Positions 5,466 through 49,095 of a DNA stretch of 64,000 bases are shown here, one piece after another. The notes under the pieces were generated by a model. The model searched no databases, was not told the origin of the DNA, and saw only the letters and a program-made list of their open reading frames with translations. This DNA comes from Octopus bimaculoides (Eukaryota). The position numbers were made by a program, and so were the translations under genes. The stretch covers positions 2,362,624 to 2,426,623 of the forward strand of contig NC_068985.1 in NCBI RefSeq assembly GCF_001194135.2. The letters are read 5' to 3'. The number at the start of each line of letters is the position of its first letter. The first letter of the stretch is position 1.

Positions 5466-6020
5466 TTCTTTTACTTGTTTCAGTCATTTCGACTGCGGCC
5501 ATACTGGAGCACCGCCTTTAGTCGAGCTAATAGACCCCGGGACTTATTCTTTGTAAGCCTAGTACTTATTCTATCGGGCTCTTTTACCGGACCGCTAAGT
5601 TACTGGGACGTAAACACACCAGCATTGGTGGTAAAGCGATGTTGGGGGGGTGGATACACACAAACACACACACACACACACACACGCACACATACACANN
5701 NNNNNNNNNNNNNNNNNNNNNNNNNNNNNNNNNNNNNNNNNNNNNNNNNNNNNNNNNNNNNNNNNNNNNNNNNNNNNNNNNNNNNNNNNNNNNNNNNNNN
5801 NNNNNNNNNNNNNNNNNNNNNNNNNNNNNNNNNNNNNNNNNNNATATATATATATATATATACGAAGGGCTTCTTTCCGTTTCCGTCTACCAAATCCACT
5901 CACAAGGCTTTGGTCGGCCTGAGGCTATAGTAGAAAACACTTGCCCAAGGTACCGTGCAGTGGGACTGAACCCGCAACCATGTGGTTGGTTAGAAAGCTA
6001 CTTACCACACAGCCATTCCT
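5466..6020 (-). mobile_element. tRNA-derived SINE, family A (head, central microsatellite, 3' module); N-gap inside
   Basis: Minus-strand head TGGCTGTGTGG (A box) ... GGGTTCAGTCCC (B box), then a CTTGGGCAAGTG core and a (TA)n/(TG)n tract. The 3' module is shared with copies at 44.1, 47.5, 48.7 and 57.8 kb. Confidence 0.85.
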
Positions 6021-6310: not shown

Positions 6311-7587
6311 TTAGGTTGTCAAGAAAGTTCTTGTGGTTTTTAACCTTTAAATTCAGATGCACACATCTCGGCTCAGATAAAACTTCATTAGTCGAAATAA
6401 ACACCATCAGAATCAACACACTTTCGCCAACACGAAACAAGTTTATTTATGCCAGTTGCATAAAAATCCTACGTTTTGGTGGCGATGAAGTTGTTGAAGG
6501 CGTGTTTGGCATCGTCTTGGTTTTTGAAGCATTTCTCACGCAGTTGTCGAGATGCTTGAAAAAGTGGTAGTCGGTGGGCGAGAGATCTGATGAGTATGGC
6601 GGATGACGCAGAGTTTCGTAGCCCAATTCGTTCAACTTCTGCAGGGTCAGTTGTATGACGTGCAACCGAGCGTTGTCGTGGAGAAGAATTGGTCCTTTTC
6701 TATTGACCAATGCTGGCTGTTGTCGGAGTTTCTTATGCATTTCATCCATTTGCTGACAGTACTTCTCCGCCGTAATGGTTTCGCCTGGATCCAAAAGGCT
6801 GTGATGGATGAGACCGGCTGCAGACCACCAAACAGTCACCATGACCTTCTTTTGGTGCAACTTTGGCTTCGTGAAGTGCCGCGGAGCTTCGTCGGCGTCC
6901 AACCATTGAGCTGAGCGTCGCTGGTTGTCGTAAAGAATTCACTTTTCATTGCAAGTCACAATCCGGTCGAGAAACGAGTCGTTCTTGTTGCGTAAAAGAA
7001 GGGAAGACGACACTTCAAAACGGTGGGTTTTTTTGTTTTTTTCAATTCGTGCGGCACCCATTTCTCAAGTATTTTTATTTTTCCAATCTCTTTCAAGTGA
7101 TTGGAAATTGTCGTATATGTTACGTCTAATTCAGAAGCAAGCTCTCGAACAGTTGTGCATGGATTGGCTTAGACTAAGGCTCTTAGTTGATCGCTGTCAA
7201 CATCCGATGGCCGACCACTATGCCTATCATCTTCAAGACTTTCGTCACCGTTACGAAATTTCTTGAATCGCCATTGTGCTGTACATTCATTTGTGGTTCC
7301 TGAGTCAAACGCATCGTTGATATCGCGACCTGTTTCTGCAGCTTTTCGGCCTAGCTTGAACTGGAATAAGAAAATTGTGCAAATTTGCTTTTTGTCCATG
7401 TTGTATTCAACGTTCCGGAAAAATGGCCTAATTATTCAAAAAGAAGAAGAGTAGCACGATTAGATAGAGCGAAAAGCGGACTTTAAAATGATATATAAAA
7501 TCAAAGTAGTTTAATGAAAATTAATTTGAAAATACATCATTTAAAACCAAAATTTTAAATTCCGCGAGAACTTTCTTGACAACCTAA
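6311..7587 (-). mobile_element. Full-length mariner DNA transposon (Hsmar1/cecropia-like), transposase inactivated
   Basis: TIRs TTAGGTTGTCAAGAAAGTTCT at both ends; TA duplication at 6309-6310 and 7588-7589. Transposase from 7399 down to ~6400 includes MDKKQICTIFLFQFKLGRKAAET, ILLHDNAR and HPPYSSDLSPTDYHFF. It carries stops, frameshifts and D-to-N at the first catalytic Asp (TCNEK*). Confidence 0.95.
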
Positions 7588-7827: not shown

Positions 7828-8222
7828 GGAGTAAAGTTTATTTGCCAACTCAACATGGCAGTCCTGGTTTGGGACGAATGTTGCTGTAATTTAGCCCCAG
7901 GAGACATCGTCTCCAGCTGGCTATACGACACGATGTGTGTCCTTATATTTTCGAGCAAGGGAATCTAGCACATCCACTCAGCTCAAAACAATATCTGTGT
8001 ATCGCGATTTCCGAGATATTTCCCTTCATCGGTACAGAATAATCGCGATACACAGATATTGTTTTGAGCTCAGTTGAGGTGCTAAATTCTCTTGTTCGAA
8101 AACATAAGGACACAGATCGTGTCGTATAACCAGCTGGAGACGATGGCTCTTGGGGCTAAATTACAGCAACATTCGTCCTAAATCAGGACTGCCATGTTAT
8201 GTTGGTAAATTACCTTTATTCC
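7828..8222. mobile_element. Fold-back/MITE-like element with ~180 bp inverted arms and a 31 nt spacer
   Basis: 7828-8009 is the reverse complement of 8041-8222 with scattered mismatches. The inner ends GCTCAAAACAATATCTGTGTATCGCGATT / AATCGCGATACACAGATATTGTTTTGAGC are perfect. Confidence 0.85.
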
Positions 8223-9469
8223 ATTAGTACCTTTATTTATTTGCTGAATTAGAAGTTTCAACAACTCAGTTTATTGTAAGTCAATTATCCATTTTGGAAT
8301 TGATACAAATATTGGTGCAGTTGATGTTGAGCGTGCTTAGAACCAAAGCGTTCCTGTCGCAGTGAGTATTACTTGATTTGAGATATTTTCGGCTATTTTC
8401 CCTCGCAGATAAAGTGACCGTGAGTTTGATTCGAGTTGTTATTGCCGTTACTTGTGTAGTTCTAAGTCCTGGAGGCATTGAGAAAACTGTCAGTTTTACT
8501 CATATCTTTGTTCGTCTGTCAATGAAGCCATTTTTCTGAAGTAAGCTGGATAGTTTTGGAACTGTCCAGTGAATCAGTCAAGCAATATTTACATATAATC
8601 AATCACTCAATGTTATAGAAAAAAACAATAAGCCAACAAACAAAAACAACTAAGTATTATCAAATGATTAATGAAATTTTAAACAACGCAGTATCATAAT
8701 TAAATTCTGTACGACCATCTTTTCAGATAATTAGCTTGCTTCAAACAACACCTACATAAAATCTAAGAAGACATTTCATTTTTCTTGTTGATTTATTTCA
8801 ATATTTATAATTACTCCTTCAAAAAATAGTTAATATATTTTGAAATTCTTTCCTTTTTCGTTGACTATTCCCAGAATTATGAATATCTTATTTTAATATT
8901 TTGTCTGTTTGAGGCAATTACTAAACTGAGTTTAGTTGCAATAATATTGAACAACAGAGATCGAAATGTTATCAGGGTGATCAGGTATGTTGTTAGTTAT
9001 ATTCGTTTTTATATAGCCTTATGGGAAGAGATATCACGTGTCGTCCATAGTACAATGGGAATTAGATTATAAGCTTATTTTTAAGTATTAAATGCCTAAT
9101 TGCCTGTGATAAGTCATTGTTAATAAGATAATTTCTTTTCAGGTTGATTCAATATTTACTTCTAAACAAACATTTCAACTGGTTTTATGCCTGACCGACA
9201 TTGTGTTATTTATGCGAATGAAGGTAGTAGATGACTTGGCCGAGTGAATACGTTTTCTTTCTTTTATTATTTTTATTTTCATTTGGAAATAAAAGTCCTC
9301 CGTTCAAATCCAGTCTTTGTATTCAGCCAAAATTGAAACACTATAAAACGATCGAAGATCAAATTTATTGAAGCGTAGTAAAATATTGTTCTTCTCTAAA
9401 ACTGATGAAGTGAAATGTCTAAAAACTAATAGTAGGCAAAAGGCTGGGGAATTATTGTAGCCGAAATCG

Positions 9470-11250: not shown

Positions 11251-11637
11251 ATATAATGGTAGAATCGATAGATCGATGGATTACATTGTAAATGATATTT
11301 AACTACATCTCTATACTTTCTGAATTAGATATTGTTTTCCACCGTTTGACGGTCGATAAAACAGGGACCAGTCAGATCGATATATCGACTCTTGAGAATA
11401 GTGCTCCAGTTAAGTCAGAGTCCAATAATTGAAACCAGTAAAGCACTAAACAAGGACTGTACCAATGGGAACGATCACAGAACGGGTTCTATCCAAGACG
11501 GACATCTCAAAGAACACCTGGCTCTGGCTGACCTGCCTTGAGTGTAATTTGGTGTTCACTCAGTGAGAGAATTTTTTTAAAAAAACCTCTTGTGTTGATG
11601 TAACCTGCTCTTAAAAACGAATTCTCAGTGAAACAAA

Positions 11638-15056: not shown

Positions 15057-15985
15057 GTTTGTGAGTAATTTCAGTCACTTGGCATTGAAACAACGGACCT
15101 TGTTTGCAATGTTATCGTTCTGTTGCGATGTGATTTGGTTGGAATGGTGTGGAGCTGCTAAACGAAGATATATTTCGTTGACTGTGAATAATAACTGAAG
15201 CACACTTGCGAACATTTAACTGAAATATTTATTGCCGAACATAAAGATATTTGGTGTTGGCTCTTCACAATGTGCAACACTAATAATTGTTGAATGGGTG
15301 AGAGAGAGAGAGAAACCGCGTTGCATCTGTGGAAGTTACTTACGAGACATTGTGTGAATGTTCAGAATGGATCTGTCTGAGAACCTGGGGTTGTCTGCAC
15401 AAATGTCTAAAACTGTTCGTATGGCAAGAGAAGAGGGGCACCAAATAGTCAACCACTTTCAACATTCTGCAATTAATTGAGCACCTAAAACGGTTTTTAT
15501 CGGAGACAATAGAACATTCGAGAAGACTATATTACGCCACAGCCTCATGCTGATTGGTTAATTAATAAACCGATCACGTGAACCAATGTTGGTTTGTTTT
15601 TTGTTTTTTTTTTTCGTAGTGTCTGGCCGGTTATCCAGTAGTTAGGTTTCGAATCATTGTTATAGTCCTATTCTAGCATACAGGAAATTTGTTTTTAGCC
15701 CATGAAGCTTATGTGGAGTTAGAAGAAAACCTACAGAATGAATGGCAGATTTTACAGAAAGAAATAAAGCCCGAGTGAATTCAAATACCTCGTCTACACT
15801 AACACAACACTCCTAAAGACGTGTGTGTATGTACGCTCGTTTTTTATAACAACTTATCGCCCTCTATTAAACTACAAGTAACCTTATGCTTTATACAACA
15901 TATGTCCCTTCTCGTCCTCTCCTTCTCTAACCTCACTGTGTCTCAGTTCTCAAATCTCACGGATGCTGGAAAAAGCCCGTCGTAT

Positions 15986-16765
15986 AGGGCTTTCCTATAA
16001 GTAGGTTATCTCCCTTGGCTAGGCGGCGCTCCATGTAGATAATTAAACTTCCGGAGGCTAACCCACGCCATTGTTATTGTTTTACGTCTTATCATGGATA
16101 TAAAGCAGCTTGATGATTCAGCTATCGAAGTACTTACTGTGCCTGAGTTAAAGAAATATTTATTATATGGACAGTATGTTACTGGAAGAAAGGCGGACTT
16201 GACTGAAAGGTTGAAAGGAATAAAAATTTTGTCGATGAAGAATGTCAACAAAGTAAATTCATCGGACGATAAGTCTGAAGTATGGGACGATACTTCAGAC
16301 AGGAATAAGCAGAAGCTTATATCNNNNNNNNNNNNNNNNNNNNNNNNNNNNNNNNNNNNNNNNNNNNNNNNNNNNNNNNNNNNNNNNNNNNNNNNNNNNN
16401 NNNNNNNNNNNNNNNNNNNNNNNNNNNNNNNNNNNNNNNNNNNNNNNNNNNNNNNNNNNNNNNNNNNNNNNNNNNNNNNNNNNNNNNNNNNNNNNNNNNN
16501 NNNNNNNNNNNNNNNNNNNNNNNNNNNNNNNNNNNNNNNNNNNNNNNNNNNNNNNNNNNNNNNNNNNNNNNNNNNNNNNNNNNNNNNNNNNNNNNNNNNA
16601 CCCCCCCAAAAAAATCCTGACCACAGAGTGTGGGTAATTATGTCAAATGTCACTGGCAATGTGCATTCAGCTGATTGCAACTGTTAAAGCAAGTCACTGA
16701 GCATGCGTACATGTCATACGGGAGAGTTCCAATCAGGGGTGGATAACACCTTATAGGAAAGCCCT
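15986..16765 (+). mobile_element. Non-autonomous TIR DNA transposon carrying a SAP + SWIM-like ORF (ISL2EU/PHIS-like by inference)
   Basis: 16 bp perfect TIR AGGGCTTTCCTATAAG at 15986 and its reverse complement ending at 16765, imperfect to ~25 bp. Flanks TATA|GGG ... CCC|TATA are compatible with an AT, TA or TATA duplication. Confidence 0.8.
16094..16687 (+). CDS. SAP-domain protein fragment ending in the N-terminal half of a SWIM-type Zn finger; centre unsequenced (N 16324-16599)
   Basis: LTVPELKKYL..YGQYVTGRKADLTERL is a SAP signature. HRVWVIMSNVTGNVHSADCNC matches the WVxxxxxGxVxxAHCxC lead-in of transposon-associated SWIM fingers. Same frame on both sides of the gap. Confidence 0.65.
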   Translation: MDIKQLDDSAIEVLTVPELKKYLLYGQYVTGRKADLTERLKGIKILSMKNVNKVNSSDDKSEVWDDTSDRNKQKLIXXXXXXXXXXXXXXXXXXXXXXXXXXXXXXXXXXXXXXXXXXXXXXXXXXXXXXXXXXXXXXXXXXXXXXXXXXXXXXXXXXXXXXXXXXXXXPPQKNPDHRVWVIMSNVTGNVHSADCNC

Positions 16766-17224
16766 ATATGTATACACGCGTGTGTGCGCGAGTGCGTGTT
16801 CGTGTGAATATTTAGAAAGCTACGCAGAGCAACGCGTATGGATGAAGTAACTTTTTGCAACCCACCTATGGATAGTGATATTATTAATTTGGTTAGGCTG
16901 CAACCGGTAAAGTTTGTCGATGTTTCCTGTCAACTAAATCGACCATATACTTCCGTACTTTTGAATTTGTTTGAAATAAAAAATTCCTTACATAAAAGAG
17001 ATAAGCGTTGAGACAGGAAAAGAATCTGGCCATAAAAATCCCAGCCCATGAATTTACTCTCGTCGAAGTCGTTAAACAAAACAAACGAAGGAAAAGTGTA
17101 TATGCTTGCTTTCCAGCTCGTAGAGAATCATCGAATGCAAACATGTCTTGGCAAAAACTTTCAGCCCTTGGTTTAGTAAATAATCATTGCTCATTATCAT
17201 CAAAATATTGATTTCAAATTTAGA

Positions 17225-19400: not shown

Positions 19401-22400
19401 ATGTAAAGTAAAATCCGGGCTGCAGGTATTACCCTACCTAAAAGACTGAATGTTGCTCGTCTTAGGTGTAATAGTGTGAAGAGACGTTTACGAGAGGAAA
19501 TGAATGTTGCGGGTATTGGGGAGGATTGGCCGACCCTTAAAAAGTCAGTTTATGATATAGGCAAGAAATTTCTGGGATTGATACAAAGAAAGCAATTTTA
19601 AAGAAATGGTTTAAAGAAAATGATGAACATATAGATGACTTATTGGCTGATAAAAACGTACTATGTCACACTATTTATCAGCATAGGGAACTCAAGGATG
19701 TGAAATCACGTGTGAGGCGGAGGCTCTCTCAAATGAGGGATACGTGGTGGAGTAAGAAGGCTGATGAGATACAGGCGGCGTNNNNNNNNNNGTGGTGGAG
19801 TAAGAAGGCTGATGAGATACAGGCGGCGTCGGATTCCAATAACACAAAGCTGTTGTATGGTCTCTTGCAAGAAGTTTATGGACCGACTTCTTTTCTGATG
19901 ACACCACTTCGAAGCAGGGATGGTAAAGAACTTCTTCGTGATTCACAAGGAATTCTGCGAAGGTGGCAAGAACACTTTGATGAACTTTTGAATCAGCAGT
20001 TTGTAGTNNNNNNNNNNTGATTCACAAGGAATTCTGCGAAGGTGGCAAGAACACTTTGATGAACTTTTGAATCAGCAGTTTGTAGTTAGTGAGGATGTTC
20101 TCAATCTCATCCCTGAATTACCTGTGAAGGCGGCTCTCACAGAACCACCAAATCTGGAAGAAGTTGCAGTGGCTGTCTCAAGGATGAATAATGGGAGGTC
20201 TCCGGGTATGGATGGCATACATGCGGAGTTGTTATAGCACTGTGGTGAGAAACTTCTGCAGCAACTTCACTCTTTGTTTGGCAGGATATGGGCTAGTGAA
20301 TCTGAGGACTGGAGAGATACAGTAATGGTGGTCTTATATAAGGGAAAAGGCAACAGGAATAATTGTGGTAACTATAGGGGAATATCATTGCTTTCTTATT
20401 TCTTTTTTTAGTTCTTTATTGCCCACAAGGGGCTAAACATAGGGGGGACAAACAAGGACAGACAAAAGGATCAAGTCGATTACATCGACCCCAGTGCATA
20501 ACTGGTACTTAATTTATTGACCCCGAAAGGATGAGAGGTAAAGTCGACTTCGGCAGAATTTGAACTCAGAACGTAACAGCTAACGTTTCTGCCAGCTCGC
20601 CGCCTTAAAAATATCATTGCTTTCTGCCGTGGGAAAGGTTTTATGCAGGGTACTTCTGGATCGTCTGCTGAAACACGTTGCAGATTGTGTTCTTCCAGAA
20701 AGTCAATCTGGTTTTCGTGTGGGACGTGGCACTGCTGATGTGATCTTCTCAGCTAGACAGCTTCAGGAAAAGTGTGTGGAACAGGGTTTCGATTTATATC
20801 AGGTTTTTGTCGATCTGACAAAGGCCTTCGATACAGTTAATAGAAAAGCACTATGGAAAGACCTCCAGAAACTTGGTTGTCCTGAAAAGTTCCTTGCTTT
20901 GGTTAGGTCTTTTTATGAAGACATGAAGGGTAGGGTTAATGTTAGAGGTAAAATGTCGGAGCCTATCTCAGTACAAAATGGAGTGAAACAGGGGGATATT
21001 CTGGCACCGACCCTATTTGCCATATATTTTGTGATGGTTTTCTGTATTGTGTTCAAAAACTGCAGATATCCATTATCGAACCTCTGGCAGCATATTTAAT
21101 ATCATCAGAGACCTTTTGTATGCAGATGATTGTGCTCTAGCAGTGCACACAGAGATTAATATGCAACACATTTTGAATGCATTCTCTGATGCTTGCACTA
21201 CCTTAGGATTGACAGTCAGTCTCAAGAAAACGGTTGTCATGTACCAACCCTCCCCTGGTAAGCAGCCTAGTGAACCAAATATCTATGTATAAGGTAAACG
21301 ACTTGGTGTAGTCGATCAGTTTGTCTACCTGGGAAGTACTGTTAATATATATATAGCAATTTGGATAAGAAATTCCATACAGAATTAGGAAAGCAAGTGA
21401 TGGTTTCGGAAGGCTAGAAAGGCGCCTCTTGAGTCGCCGAGACATATGCAGGAAGACAAAGATAAAGGTGTACAAGGCATGTGTACTCTCTTCTCTTCTT
21501 TATGCCTGCGAGATCTGGGTCACGTATCGATACCACCTTAAACAACTGGAACGTTTCCATCAGATGTGTCTCAGACAGACTATGGCATTAAGTGGGAAGA
21601 CCGCATCAGTGATCTTGAGATGTTGGAAAGCTCTTGGTGTGAAAGTATCGAAGCTCTTGTGTTGAAGCAAAGGCTCAGATGGAGTGGTCATCTGGTCAGG
21701 ATGAAAGATTCAAGGATGCCAAAACAACTCTTTTATGAAGAGTTAGCTAAAGGAGAACGACCTCCACATAAGCCAAAAATGAGATATAGACTTGCTGAAG
21801 GCTTCCTTAAGAGATGCTAGCATCTCTCCTGACACATGGGAGGGCATAGCTATTGACCGTAGCAGGTGGAGAAGGATTGTGCATGAGGGGACAGNNNNNN
21901 NNNNCACATGGGAGGGCATAGCTATTGACCGTAGCAGGTGGAGAAGGATTGTGCATGAGGGGACAGCTACTTCTGAGAAATCTCGAGTTACATATGAGAA
22001 AGTAAGGAGGGATGTCGGGAAGGGCATTGCTGTTGCACTTCCAGATGGTAAGGGTCTTCCTATGACGCTGACATGGAGTGTCTGTGCAAGACCCTGCCTC
22101 AGTAAAGCTGGACTCAGGAGTCATCTTCGTAGTCATAAAGCGAGACTGGTGATTAACAACCAGGCCGATGGTGGTGGTGCTACACACCATACTAATCATA
22201 TCTGTCAGACATGTGGAAGGGAGTGTAATTCAGCAAGAGGACTTAAACAACATGCAAAGGTACATGAAGCCCAGTTACAACTACAGCCGGCTATTGCCGG
22301 TAAAGGATTTAGCTGCCATTTCTGTACAAGACGTTGTAGATCTTTAGCTGTGCTAAAAAGTCACGTTCGATCACAGCACTGTTAATAGTTTAGCCTCATG

Positions 22401-26862: not shown

Positions 26863-27900
26863 TATTATTATTATTATTATTATTGTTATTATTATTATTA
26901 TTATTATAGACGTCGCACAGTATACAATATCGTGAGTTTGTTGATTGAAGACATTGTATCTGCTGGGGGTTTCTAATGTTTGTAAGTCACAACAAGGACC
27001 TCAGACAAACAGTACTTTACACAATATGCGTGCAGTTCCAAGTGATGCCAACTTTTGCAATATATCTAAATTATAGGGTATCTCTAAGGTTTTCAGATGT
27101 TTTTTTGTTTTTGTTTTTTTCAGAATGGGTCGTATTGAACCCAATGCTCCGATGACAATAGGGATAATCTTTATGTTCGACTATCGTAGCTGCCACATCT
27201 TAACAATCTCAATTCTCAGGTCTCCATATTTATCATCCTTTTCTCTTTCTTTCATGATGATATGTTGATCTCCTGACACTGCCACATCAATTATTAGGCA
27301 CTCTTGTTTGTCCCACCTAAAGGTTACTATATCCGGCCTTCGGTGCTCTACAACTTTGTCTGAAAATCAAAGTCCCAGAGAATTTTTGCCTTCCCCTTTT
27401 TGTCCATTTCATTTTCCAGTGTATGCCAGTACCAAGCACCCGTGGCTTCATATCCTTACTTACGGGATAGAAGCCAGTGGAGGTTTGGGGCTACTTTGTC
27501 GTGTCTACGCTTGTATTCTTTCTGCGCAAAACTTTCACAAGCACTAACAATGTGAGTCACACTTTCGACCCTCTTCCCACACATTCTGCAGAGGTTCGTT
27601 GCACTTGTGTGGTGTATATTCTTTTTCACTGAGTTGGTAATCAATACCTGGCCCTGGGCCACGATGCTTAGGCTTTCAGTATTCGTTTTTGGGTCATCCT
27701 TCTGGAGCCACCTCCATGATGCTTCCGGGTCTTTTAATTTGTTGGTTTCATGGTGGAACTGATCGTGTAATTCCGTACGGAGTAGGGTCTCTTCTCTCTC
27801 GTTGGCTGTTCTTGTTCGGAATTCATGAGCATTCGCAAGTCCACTTTTGTTAACTCCTTCTGCACTAGCAGCATACTGTAGCAAGTCTTCTTTGCAGTGT
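26863..27900 (-). mobile_element. RLE-type LINE 3' portion (CCHC knuckle + endonuclease) with (AAT)n tail
   Basis: LCRMCGKRVESVTHIVSACESFAQKEYKRRHDKVAPNLHW and LQKLASLGTARILCKVL; (TTA)n on the + strand at 26862-26906. Confidence 0.9.
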
Positions 27901-48528: not shown

Positions 48529-48664
48529 GCTCTGAATTATGTAAACTTTATATTTTATAGTTCTTAGCTAACATGATTTATGATTGTAATCAATTTATTT
48601 TGTCAAAATATAGAATTTGGGCCAAAATAACTCTATAATAAAAATTTTTGTATACACTTCCATA

Positions 48665-48827
48665 GGCACAGGAGTGGCTGTGTGGTGAGTAGCTTGCTTA
48701 CCAACCACATAGCTCCGGGTTCAGTCCCACTGCGTGGCACTTTGGGCAAGTGTCTTCTACCATAGTCTCGGGCTGACGAAAGCCTTGTGAGTGGATTTGG
48801 TAGACAGAAACTGAAAGAAGCCCGTCG

Positions 48828-48863
<36 letters not shown>

Positions 48864-49095
48864 TATATATATATCTAATGTGTGTGTGTGTGTCTGTGTC
48901 TGTGTTTGTCCCACCACCATTGCTTGACAACTGGTGGTGGTGGTGTGTTCACGTCTCTGTAACTTAGTGGTTCAGCAAAAAGAGACCAATAGAATAAGTA
49001 CTAGGCTTACAAAGAATAAGTCAATTTGTTCGACTCAAGGCGGTGCTCCAGCATGGCTGCAGTTGGATGACTGAAACAAGTAAAAGAGTCAAAGA
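48665..49095 (+). mobile_element. SINE family A, near-complete young copy
   Basis: A box TGGCTGTGTGG, B box GGGTTCAGTCCC, central (TA)(CA)(TG) tract, and a 3' module ending ACAAGTAAAAGAGTCAAAGAG. Confidence 0.9.

Follow-up and report, generated by a model that had tools for sequence, protein, structure and literature searches.

Within the window, the whole 64-kb stretch of Octopus bimaculoides DNA that was analysed, lies a short unit with inverted ends and a single open reading frame (ORF). Two questions are raised by this locus: to which group of transposons does the unit belong, and does its ORF still code for a working protein?

The unit is 780 bp long (15986-16765) and is bounded by perfect 16-nt inverted ends, AGGGCTTTCCTATAAG. 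The initial annotation of this DNA had described it in the same terms, and its terminal inverted repeats were located again at 15986-16001 and 16750-16765. The terminal features are:

15984-15985, no strand: left AT, a putative 2-bp target-site duplication in the context T-AT-A; the same AT is present at the homologous ends of the Sinanodonta element and of six Mya copies
15986-16001, plus strand: left terminal inverted repeat AGGGCTTTCCTATAAG, from an inverted-repeat and k-mer search; 14 of its 16 positions are identical to the Sinanodonta end AGGGCATTCCAATAAG
16002-16093, plus strand: left subterminal region and leader of the accessory gene, including the conserved ACTTCCGG at 16047-16054; it aligns with the Sinanodonta left end
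16701-16749, minus strand: right subterminal region kept from the parent element; of the 75 terminal nucleotides (16691-16765), 55 agree with the right end of the Sinanodonta element
16750-16765, minus strand: right terminal inverted repeat, CTTATAGGAAAGCCCT in plus-strand letters, from an inverted-repeat and k-mer search
16766-16767, no strand: right AT, a putative target-site duplication, adjoining the right inverted end

A repeat finder gives 19 nt, not 16, for the inverted repeat because the flanks, T-AT on the left and AT-A on the right, are themselves palindromic. A 15-mer of the inverted end has only two sites in the 64-kb window, both of them the unit's own ends, compared to a chance expectation of 0.13 matches. 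Neither a second copy nor any other fragment of the unit was found elsewhere in the window by sequence search. The AT duplication at the octopus locus is putative, as it is read from one copy in a TA-rich context, T-AT-A, together with the homology to bivalve elements described below. It had also been noticed that the left-flank sequence AAAGCCC pairs with the start of the terminal repeat, GGGCTTT. It is indeed the reverse complement over 7 nt, and no meaning is attached to this pairing. Furthermore, the host flank GGAAAAAGCCCGTCGTAT (15966-15985) resembles the element's right terminus GGAAAGCCCTAT (16755-16767). The resemblance may be due to chance, or end-like sequences may attract insertions, as the tandem copies in Mya would also suggest.

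The region around the unit is repeat-rich DNA, a patchwork of repeats:

6447-6902, minus strand: remnant of a mariner-type transposase (Transposase_1, E = 2.6e-24)
15973-15982, plus strand: AAGCCCGTCG motif of the host flank, here a marker of the AT-rich target; at its other sites in the window it stands before (TA)n in a SINE-like repeat
19643-22385, plus strand: LINE reverse transcriptase (RVT_1, E = 1.3e-19) with a C2H2-finger tail
27456-27884, minus strand: zf-RVT fragment, from a domain search

The AAGCCCGTCG motif recurs at 48818 and, with one mismatch, on the minus strand at 5863, in both cases just before the (TA)n of a SINE-like repeat. The two repeats, at 48660-48960 (plus strand) and 5700-6000 (minus strand), contain the internal series AAGCCCGTCG-(TA)n-(CA)n-(GT)n. 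An assembly gap at 5699-5843 starts inside such a SINE-like-repeat microsatellite. The insertion site had earlier been assigned to the context of a family A SINE. That assignment holds for the 10-15-nt motif and the microsatellite, which are common to both, but upstream of AAGCCCGTCG the flank gives no better alignment with the SINE body of the window than shuffled sequence. An origin from the SINE body was considered for the left as well as the right flank and rejected on this ground.

The ORF starts with an ATG at 16094 and runs into an assembly gap. The same arithmetic frame resumes at 16601 and ends with a stop codon at 16685-16687. The features of this part are:

16094-16323, plus strand: first 76 codons of the relic ORF, corresponding to the N-terminus of an ISL2EU accessory protein (ORF translation, Pfam and protein search)
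approximately 16130-16216, plus strand: SAP motif, one codon short in the window copy (Pfam scoring and comparison with sister copies)
16324-16599, no strand: assembly gap of 276 N, length estimated; judging by colinearity with the sister gene model P0242, some 250-270 nt of the same exon are expected inside
16601-16687, plus strand: last part of the relic ORF, …NPDHRVWVIMSNVTGNVHSADCNC followed by the stop codon; only the first (CxC) half of a SWIM finger is present; 73% identity to residues 158-179 of the Sinanodonta protein P0016

The initial annotation had a single ORF filling most of the unit with its frame kept across the gap. The ATG and the stop are as stated there, but the frame between them depends on the estimated 276 N. 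In P0242, which is uninterrupted, the distance from NKQKLI to NPDH is 267 nt (89 codons), compared to 2 + 276 + 13 = 291 nt in the window. The number of N is thus about 24 nt off, and the apparent maintenance of frame carries no information. The two flanks of the gap are nevertheless colinear with P0242 and about the right distance apart. At the right edge of the gap the bases ACCCCCCCAAAAAAA seem to be of doubtful quality, because TSNQKK is encoded at this place in all sister copies.

Such a gap inside a multi-copy repeat, with poor-looking bases at its right edge where the sisters encode TSNQKK, raises the suspicion of an assembly chimaera, in which halves of two repeat copies were scaffolded across the gap and there is no real 780-bp unit at this locus. 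The two parts are colinear, however, and their estimated spacing of 291 nt is near the 267 nt of P0242. Moreover, the flanks, when joined, restore a consistent AAGCCCGTCG-(TA)n-(CA/GT)n series of the kind present at 48818. A chimaera is therefore extremely unlikely, and the unit is treated here as a real insertion. An unrelated insertion might, in principle, lie within the gap. The deletion junction described below lies in sequenced DNA to the right of the gap, so that the absence of the YqaJ and transposase sequences from the unit is independent of what the gap contains.

The ORF had been described as carrying a SAP motif followed by a SWIM-like part, and each of these descriptions applies in part. 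The SAP motif is recognisable, but the window copy scores only 18.4 bits against PF02037, below the Pfam cut-off for this family (gathering threshold, 23.9 bits), because one codon is lost (KKYLRLYGQ has become KKYLLYGQ). Five sister copies were scored, and three of them pass the threshold (P0001 with 25.4, P0009 with 25.3 and P0003 with 24.4 bits), whereas P0002 (20.9) and P0005 (20.6) fail. As for the SWIM finger (PF04434, CxCxnCxH), its first half, CxC, is present at 16676-16684, but it is followed directly by the stop and the deletion junction, the CxH half is absent, and no Pfam match was found for this part of the window ORF. The peptide ACVHVIRE, which is encoded past the stop in another frame, was considered as a frameshifted CxH half and rejected: it aligns with the right subterminal DNA of the elements from Sinanodonta and Mya, which is non-coding, and the relatives encode the CxH half in the next exon.

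The origin of the ORF is revealed by its relatives. The translated window matches P0016 over residues 1-61 at 43% identity (tblastn, E = 3.5e-9) and over residues 158-179 at 73%. An exhaustive HMMER search with the sister copy P0005 found 106 relatives. The long ones (P0016, P0020, P0024, P0035 and P0098, 554-599 aa) begin with a SAP domain, have a CxCxnCxH SWIM finger at around residue 180 and end with a YqaJ (PF09588) or viral alkaline exonuclease domain. SAP-SWIM-YqaJ proteins of about 554-600 aa are both widespread and multi-copy in bivalves and gastropods. The 183-aa P0242 aligns with the 565-aa P0016 end-to-end on residues 4-179 with 55% identity (E = 5e-67), and the alignment stops exactly at CxC.

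At six loci in Mya arenaria and in Sinanodonta woodiana, the SAP-SWIM-YqaJ gene is arranged tail-to-tail with a gene encoding a THAP/HTH_Tnp_4/DDE_Tnp_4 protein. The initial annotation had suggested looking for long copies with DDE_Tnp_4/THAP and YqaJ ORFs, and these bivalve elements are such copies. In Haliotis cracherodii, the partner of the SAP-SWIM-YqaJ gene, likewise tail-to-tail, is an uncalled and broken transposase homolog with 43-66% identity to that of Sinanodonta. The bivalve gene pairs are situated in elements of 4.6-6.5 kb with AT flanks. The Sinanodonta element (L007, 7901-12464) is 4.56 kb long and reads T-AT-AGGGCATTCCAATAAG…CTTATTGGAATGCCCT-AT-A. The Mya copies are 99.9% identical across 6.48 kb, and the similarity ends at AT-TGTCCTTTCCGATAAC…GTTATCGGAAAGGACA-AT, beyond which the flanks are unrelated. 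An AT is present at both ends in five of the six Mya copies and at the left end only in the sixth, the right flank of L005 reading differently. The level of identity among these copies (L001-L006, 7913-14398; 99.9% over 6.48 kb) suggests that ISL2EU elements have been active very recently in Mya arenaria. In L002 (14380-14415), two copies stand head to tail with one AT between them (…GGACA-AT-TGTCC…). That the two tandem copies have this single AT in common argues that AT is target sequence and does not belong to the element. The Haliotis element (L008) keeps AT-TCGACTTTCCGAAAAG at its right end, but its left end is degenerate (5860-6005 compared to 11335-11480) and its transposase is frameshifted. 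Judged by these sequence changes, it is a decaying full-length copy.

The Sinanodonta, Mya and Haliotis elements have an ACTTCCG(G/C) motif near each end, some 60-100 nt inward and inverted at one end relative to the other, so placed that it stands upstream of each inward-reading gene. Its sites are at 7961-7976 and 12368-12383 in L007, at 5977-5990 and 11339-11352 in L008, and at 16047-16054 in the window, where the octopus unit retains the left one only. The motif could be a shared promoter or binding site.

The defining features of ISL2EU elements are the duplication of an AT and a pair of ORFs, the first for a DDE/HTH/THAP transposase and the second for a YqaJ protein. The elements average about 4.8 kb and are confined to animals (Han et al. 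2015, PMC4482050; Han et al. 2014, PMC4122938). Their target has been written A/AT/T (PMC4482050). The octopus unit has an AT at both ends, in a single copy and at a TA-rich T-AT-A site. Its inverted end is identical to the ISL2EU end of Sinanodonta, AGGGCATTCCAATAAG, at 14 of 16 positions, and homology with the elements of Sinanodonta and Mya, which encode DDE_Tnp_4, HTH and THAP domains, covers the ends and some 80 subterminal nucleotides. At the left ends, 60 bases are matched between 90 nt of octopus and 82 nt of Sinanodonta sequence, with a score of 25 compared to a maximum of 1 in 300 shuffles. At the right ends, where 55 of 75 nt are matched, the score is 26 and the maximum in 300 shuffles is 2. 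The second, YqaJ-type ORF is represented by homology, in that the relic ORF corresponds to the N-terminal 180 residues of SAP-SWIM-YqaJ proteins and the YqaJ domain itself is deleted here. Searches with the relatives (tblastn) found neither YqaJ nor transposase coding sequence of the parent element anywhere in the window.

A duplication of TA or TATA is another possible reading of the flanks of the unit, and mariner remnants are present nearby in the window. Both observations would suit a different superfamily that targets TA, Tc1/mariner or another, with the likeness to ISL2EU being coincidental. However, the full-length relatives encode DDE_Tnp_4/THAP transposases and not mariner-type ones, and not only the ORF but both ends, over 75-85 nt each, are homologous to these elements. 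Furthermore, the Mya copies, with six different flanks, put the AT directly at the homologous end position. A coincidence of this kind is so improbable as to be almost negligible. The assignment to the ISL2EU group of the PHIS superfamily, first made in the initial annotation, is thus borne out by the genes of the long relatives, the AT flanks and the near-identical inverted ends.

The unit is like the ISL2EU group in its AT flanks and in having ends homologous to those of THAP+HTH+DDE_Tnp_4/YqaJ elements. It differs in lacking both the transposase and YqaJ, and its inverted end starts with AG, whereas GG is usual in the literature. Its closest likeness is to the full-length Sinanodonta element, which has the same T-AT…AT-A flanks, ends identical at 14 of 16 positions and, across the terminal 75-85 nt, an identity of about 73%. 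The Sinanodonta accessory protein P0016 is 55% identical over the 180 residues that the octopus family retains. The Sinanodonta element, at 4.56 kb, contains both genes and has ACTTCCGG at both ends, whereas the octopus unit, at 0.78 kb, contains exon 1 of one gene only and has ACTTCCGG at the left end only.

The way in which the unit was derived can be read from its right part:

16685-16700, plus strand: internal-deletion junction; exon-1 homology stops at TGT (16682-16684) and right-end homology begins at GCATGC (16701)

Since the exon-1 homology ends at 16684 and the right-end homology begins at 16701, one internal deletion explains the whole structure. In three relatives, Mya, Sinanodonta and Haliotis, an intron lies directly after CxCxAG, inside the SWIM finger (L003 at about 8920-8925, L007 at about 8545-8550 and L008 at about 6585-6590), and the coding part retained in the octopus unit is therefore equal to exon 1. 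If this intron is retained, a stop follows immediately (GG/GTAA) in the two bivalve elements and seven codons further on in Haliotis. The unit is one of a multi-copy set with the same ends and without transposase, and its junction is visible at 16685-16700. The earlier description of an internally deleted, transposase-less derivative that keeps the front of a YqaJ-type accessory protein is confirmed by this junction and by the homology on either side of it. Very probably, the unit derives by internal deletion from a cut-and-paste transposon of the ISL2EU group (PHIS superfamily) in O. bimaculoides and is non-autonomous.

The parent would have been an element of 4.5-6.5 kb in which two genes converge, one reading inward from either end, the SAP-SWIM-YqaJ accessory protein being encoded on the left and the THAP-HTH-DDE transposase on the right. 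A single deletion, from just past the SWIM CxC to about 65-80 nt short of the right end, would have spared the two inverted ends with their subterminal sequences and, of the accessory gene, the left leader and exon 1. The remnant would be mobile only if a full-length octopus ISL2EU element supplied a transposase recognising the common ends. Its insertion presumably took place at an AT dinucleotide in a TA-rich microsatellite, with duplication of the AT. In such a history the ORF would be a passenger relic rather than a maintained gene.

The unit resembles MITEs and other internal-deletion elements, such as Tourist from PIF/Harbinger, in keeping its ends, losing its interior, being multi-copy and depending on a transposase in trans. 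Unlike these, it keeps a sizeable coding piece and a possible promoter, and for this reason gene predictors call it a 'SAP domain-containing protein'.

Whether the ORF is more than a relic can be judged from its sister copies. They were examined as protein gene models from UniRef, and the family is thus known here at the protein level and from one DNA copy. With the first 76 codons, matches were obtained to UniRef proteins of O. bimaculoides in 12 clusters (85-98% identity), and the C-terminal part of the relic ORF matches seven. Once the members of the clusters are counted, there are about 35 O. bimaculoides gene models, 88-97% identical to the window ORF, which carry names such as 'SAP domain-containing protein' or 'uncharacterized protein'. 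The family is therefore multi-copy, which the initial annotation had named as one condition for a function of the ORF.

Only P0242 among the approximately 35 models is an uninterrupted ORF of 183 codons. P0001, P0002 and P0004 have a deletion of 8 codons plus 1 nt in common, and their ORFs end with …SQIMT: past LPDL the true sequence KDLCKLPNFTDNDI is read out of frame as KIFVSCRISQIMT, followed by a stop. The …SQIMT tail was considered as a family-wide frameshift, but P0242 shows that it results from this subfamily deletion of 8 codons plus 1 nt. The three models of the P0008 cluster have a common 1-nt frameshift. In the P0009 cluster (nine models) and in P0003, P0005, P0006, P0010, P0011, P0017 and P0235, the two halves are joined by predicted introns at AG/GT…AG, and eight sister models consist of the C-terminal half alone. 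The 98-aa models of the P0009 cluster could represent a shorter size class or, equally likely, contain introns made by the predictor, to judge by their joins at AG/GT…AG. A stop follows directly after CNC in all copies except P0014 and P0244. These two read through the inverted end, and P0244 runs on into flanking DNA. P0017 (A0A0L8I7X3) fuses the N-terminal 78 residues of the mini-element to a Kazal_2-containing, transporter-like protein; the fusion is either the exonisation of a copy or an annotation artefact.

The initial annotation had proposed that the ORF encodes a small DNA-tethering or dominant-negative regulator of the parent element. In the Drosophila P family, the KP element is an internally deleted copy that encodes a truncated DNA-binding repressor. 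The octopus unit is like KP in being a deletion derivative with an N-terminal motif of DNA-binding type and an open start. It differs in that its fragment comes from an accessory protein, not from the transposase, and in that the ORF is broken in most copies. By analogy, the mini-element family might be kept or spread by a small SAP protein that binds element DNA or the full-length accessory protein and damps transposition. In favour of this, the unit still has its left leader with the conserved ACTTCCGG and its ATG, the first 40-76 codons are open in many copies, and one copy, P0242, has its uninterrupted 183-codon ORF. The end of the ORF coincides, moreover, with the point at which intron retention would truncate the full-length protein (immediately in Mya and Sinanodonta, after seven more codons in Haliotis). 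A retained SWIM intron in the full-length clade might thus give a natural SAP-only isoform of about 180-200 aa, which the octopus mini-elements would hard-wire behind the left promoter, so that intact copies would be KP-like regulators; this elaboration, built on gene structure, is a long shot.

The damage to the copies argues against a regulator of this kind. One of about 35 models is uninterrupted, the deletion of 8 codons plus 1 nt is common to P0001, P0002 and P0004, the 1-nt frameshift is common to the P0008 cluster, and invented introns are needed in many models to join the two halves. The CxH ligands of the SWIM finger are absent in all copies because the deletion junction directly follows CxC. 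The SAP motif of the window copy is one codon short and below threshold. Finally, a crude count gives about 5% amino-acid differences per site in the SAP core compared to about 6% beside the SWIM finger. That the family is maintained or spread by such a protein is very unlikely. With a single intact ORF, the CxH missing and the SAP motif of the window copy damaged, the proposal is unsupported, and the result leans towards the outcome that the initial annotation had named as its refutation, 'ordinary deletion debris'.

The ORF is best read as a passenger relic, because it is broken in nearly all copies, the CxH half of the zinc finger is absent in all of them, the window SAP has lost a codon (18.4 bits compared to the cut-off of 23.9 and to 25.4 in P0001) and the amino-acid divergence is alike in the SAP core and beside the SWIM finger. 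The unit as a whole is unremarkable, a deletion derivative within a known group of transposons, and nothing in it suggests a functional protein product.

These results have a bearing on annotation. The approximately 35 O. bimaculoides UniProt entries named 'SAP domain-containing' or 'uncharacterized' are fragments of a transposon family, not host genes, and at least one model, P0017, joins a mini-element fragment to a transporter-like gene. In the literature searched, nothing specific was found on ISL2EU elements from cephalopods or on a SAP/SWIM/YqaJ architecture, and no autonomous octopus partner came to light, there being no full-length protein from a cephalopod among the 120 matches listed of 158. 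The octopus family is probably undescribed in papers and may be present in repeat libraries. An ISL2EU lineage is hereby documented in cephalopods. Beyond the annotation and the lineage record, the unit is an ordinary decaying non-autonomous transposon. The inverted ends and some 80 nt of the subterminal DNA are conserved in both an octopus and a freshwater mussel, which points to the sequences that the transposase, and perhaps the promoters, need.
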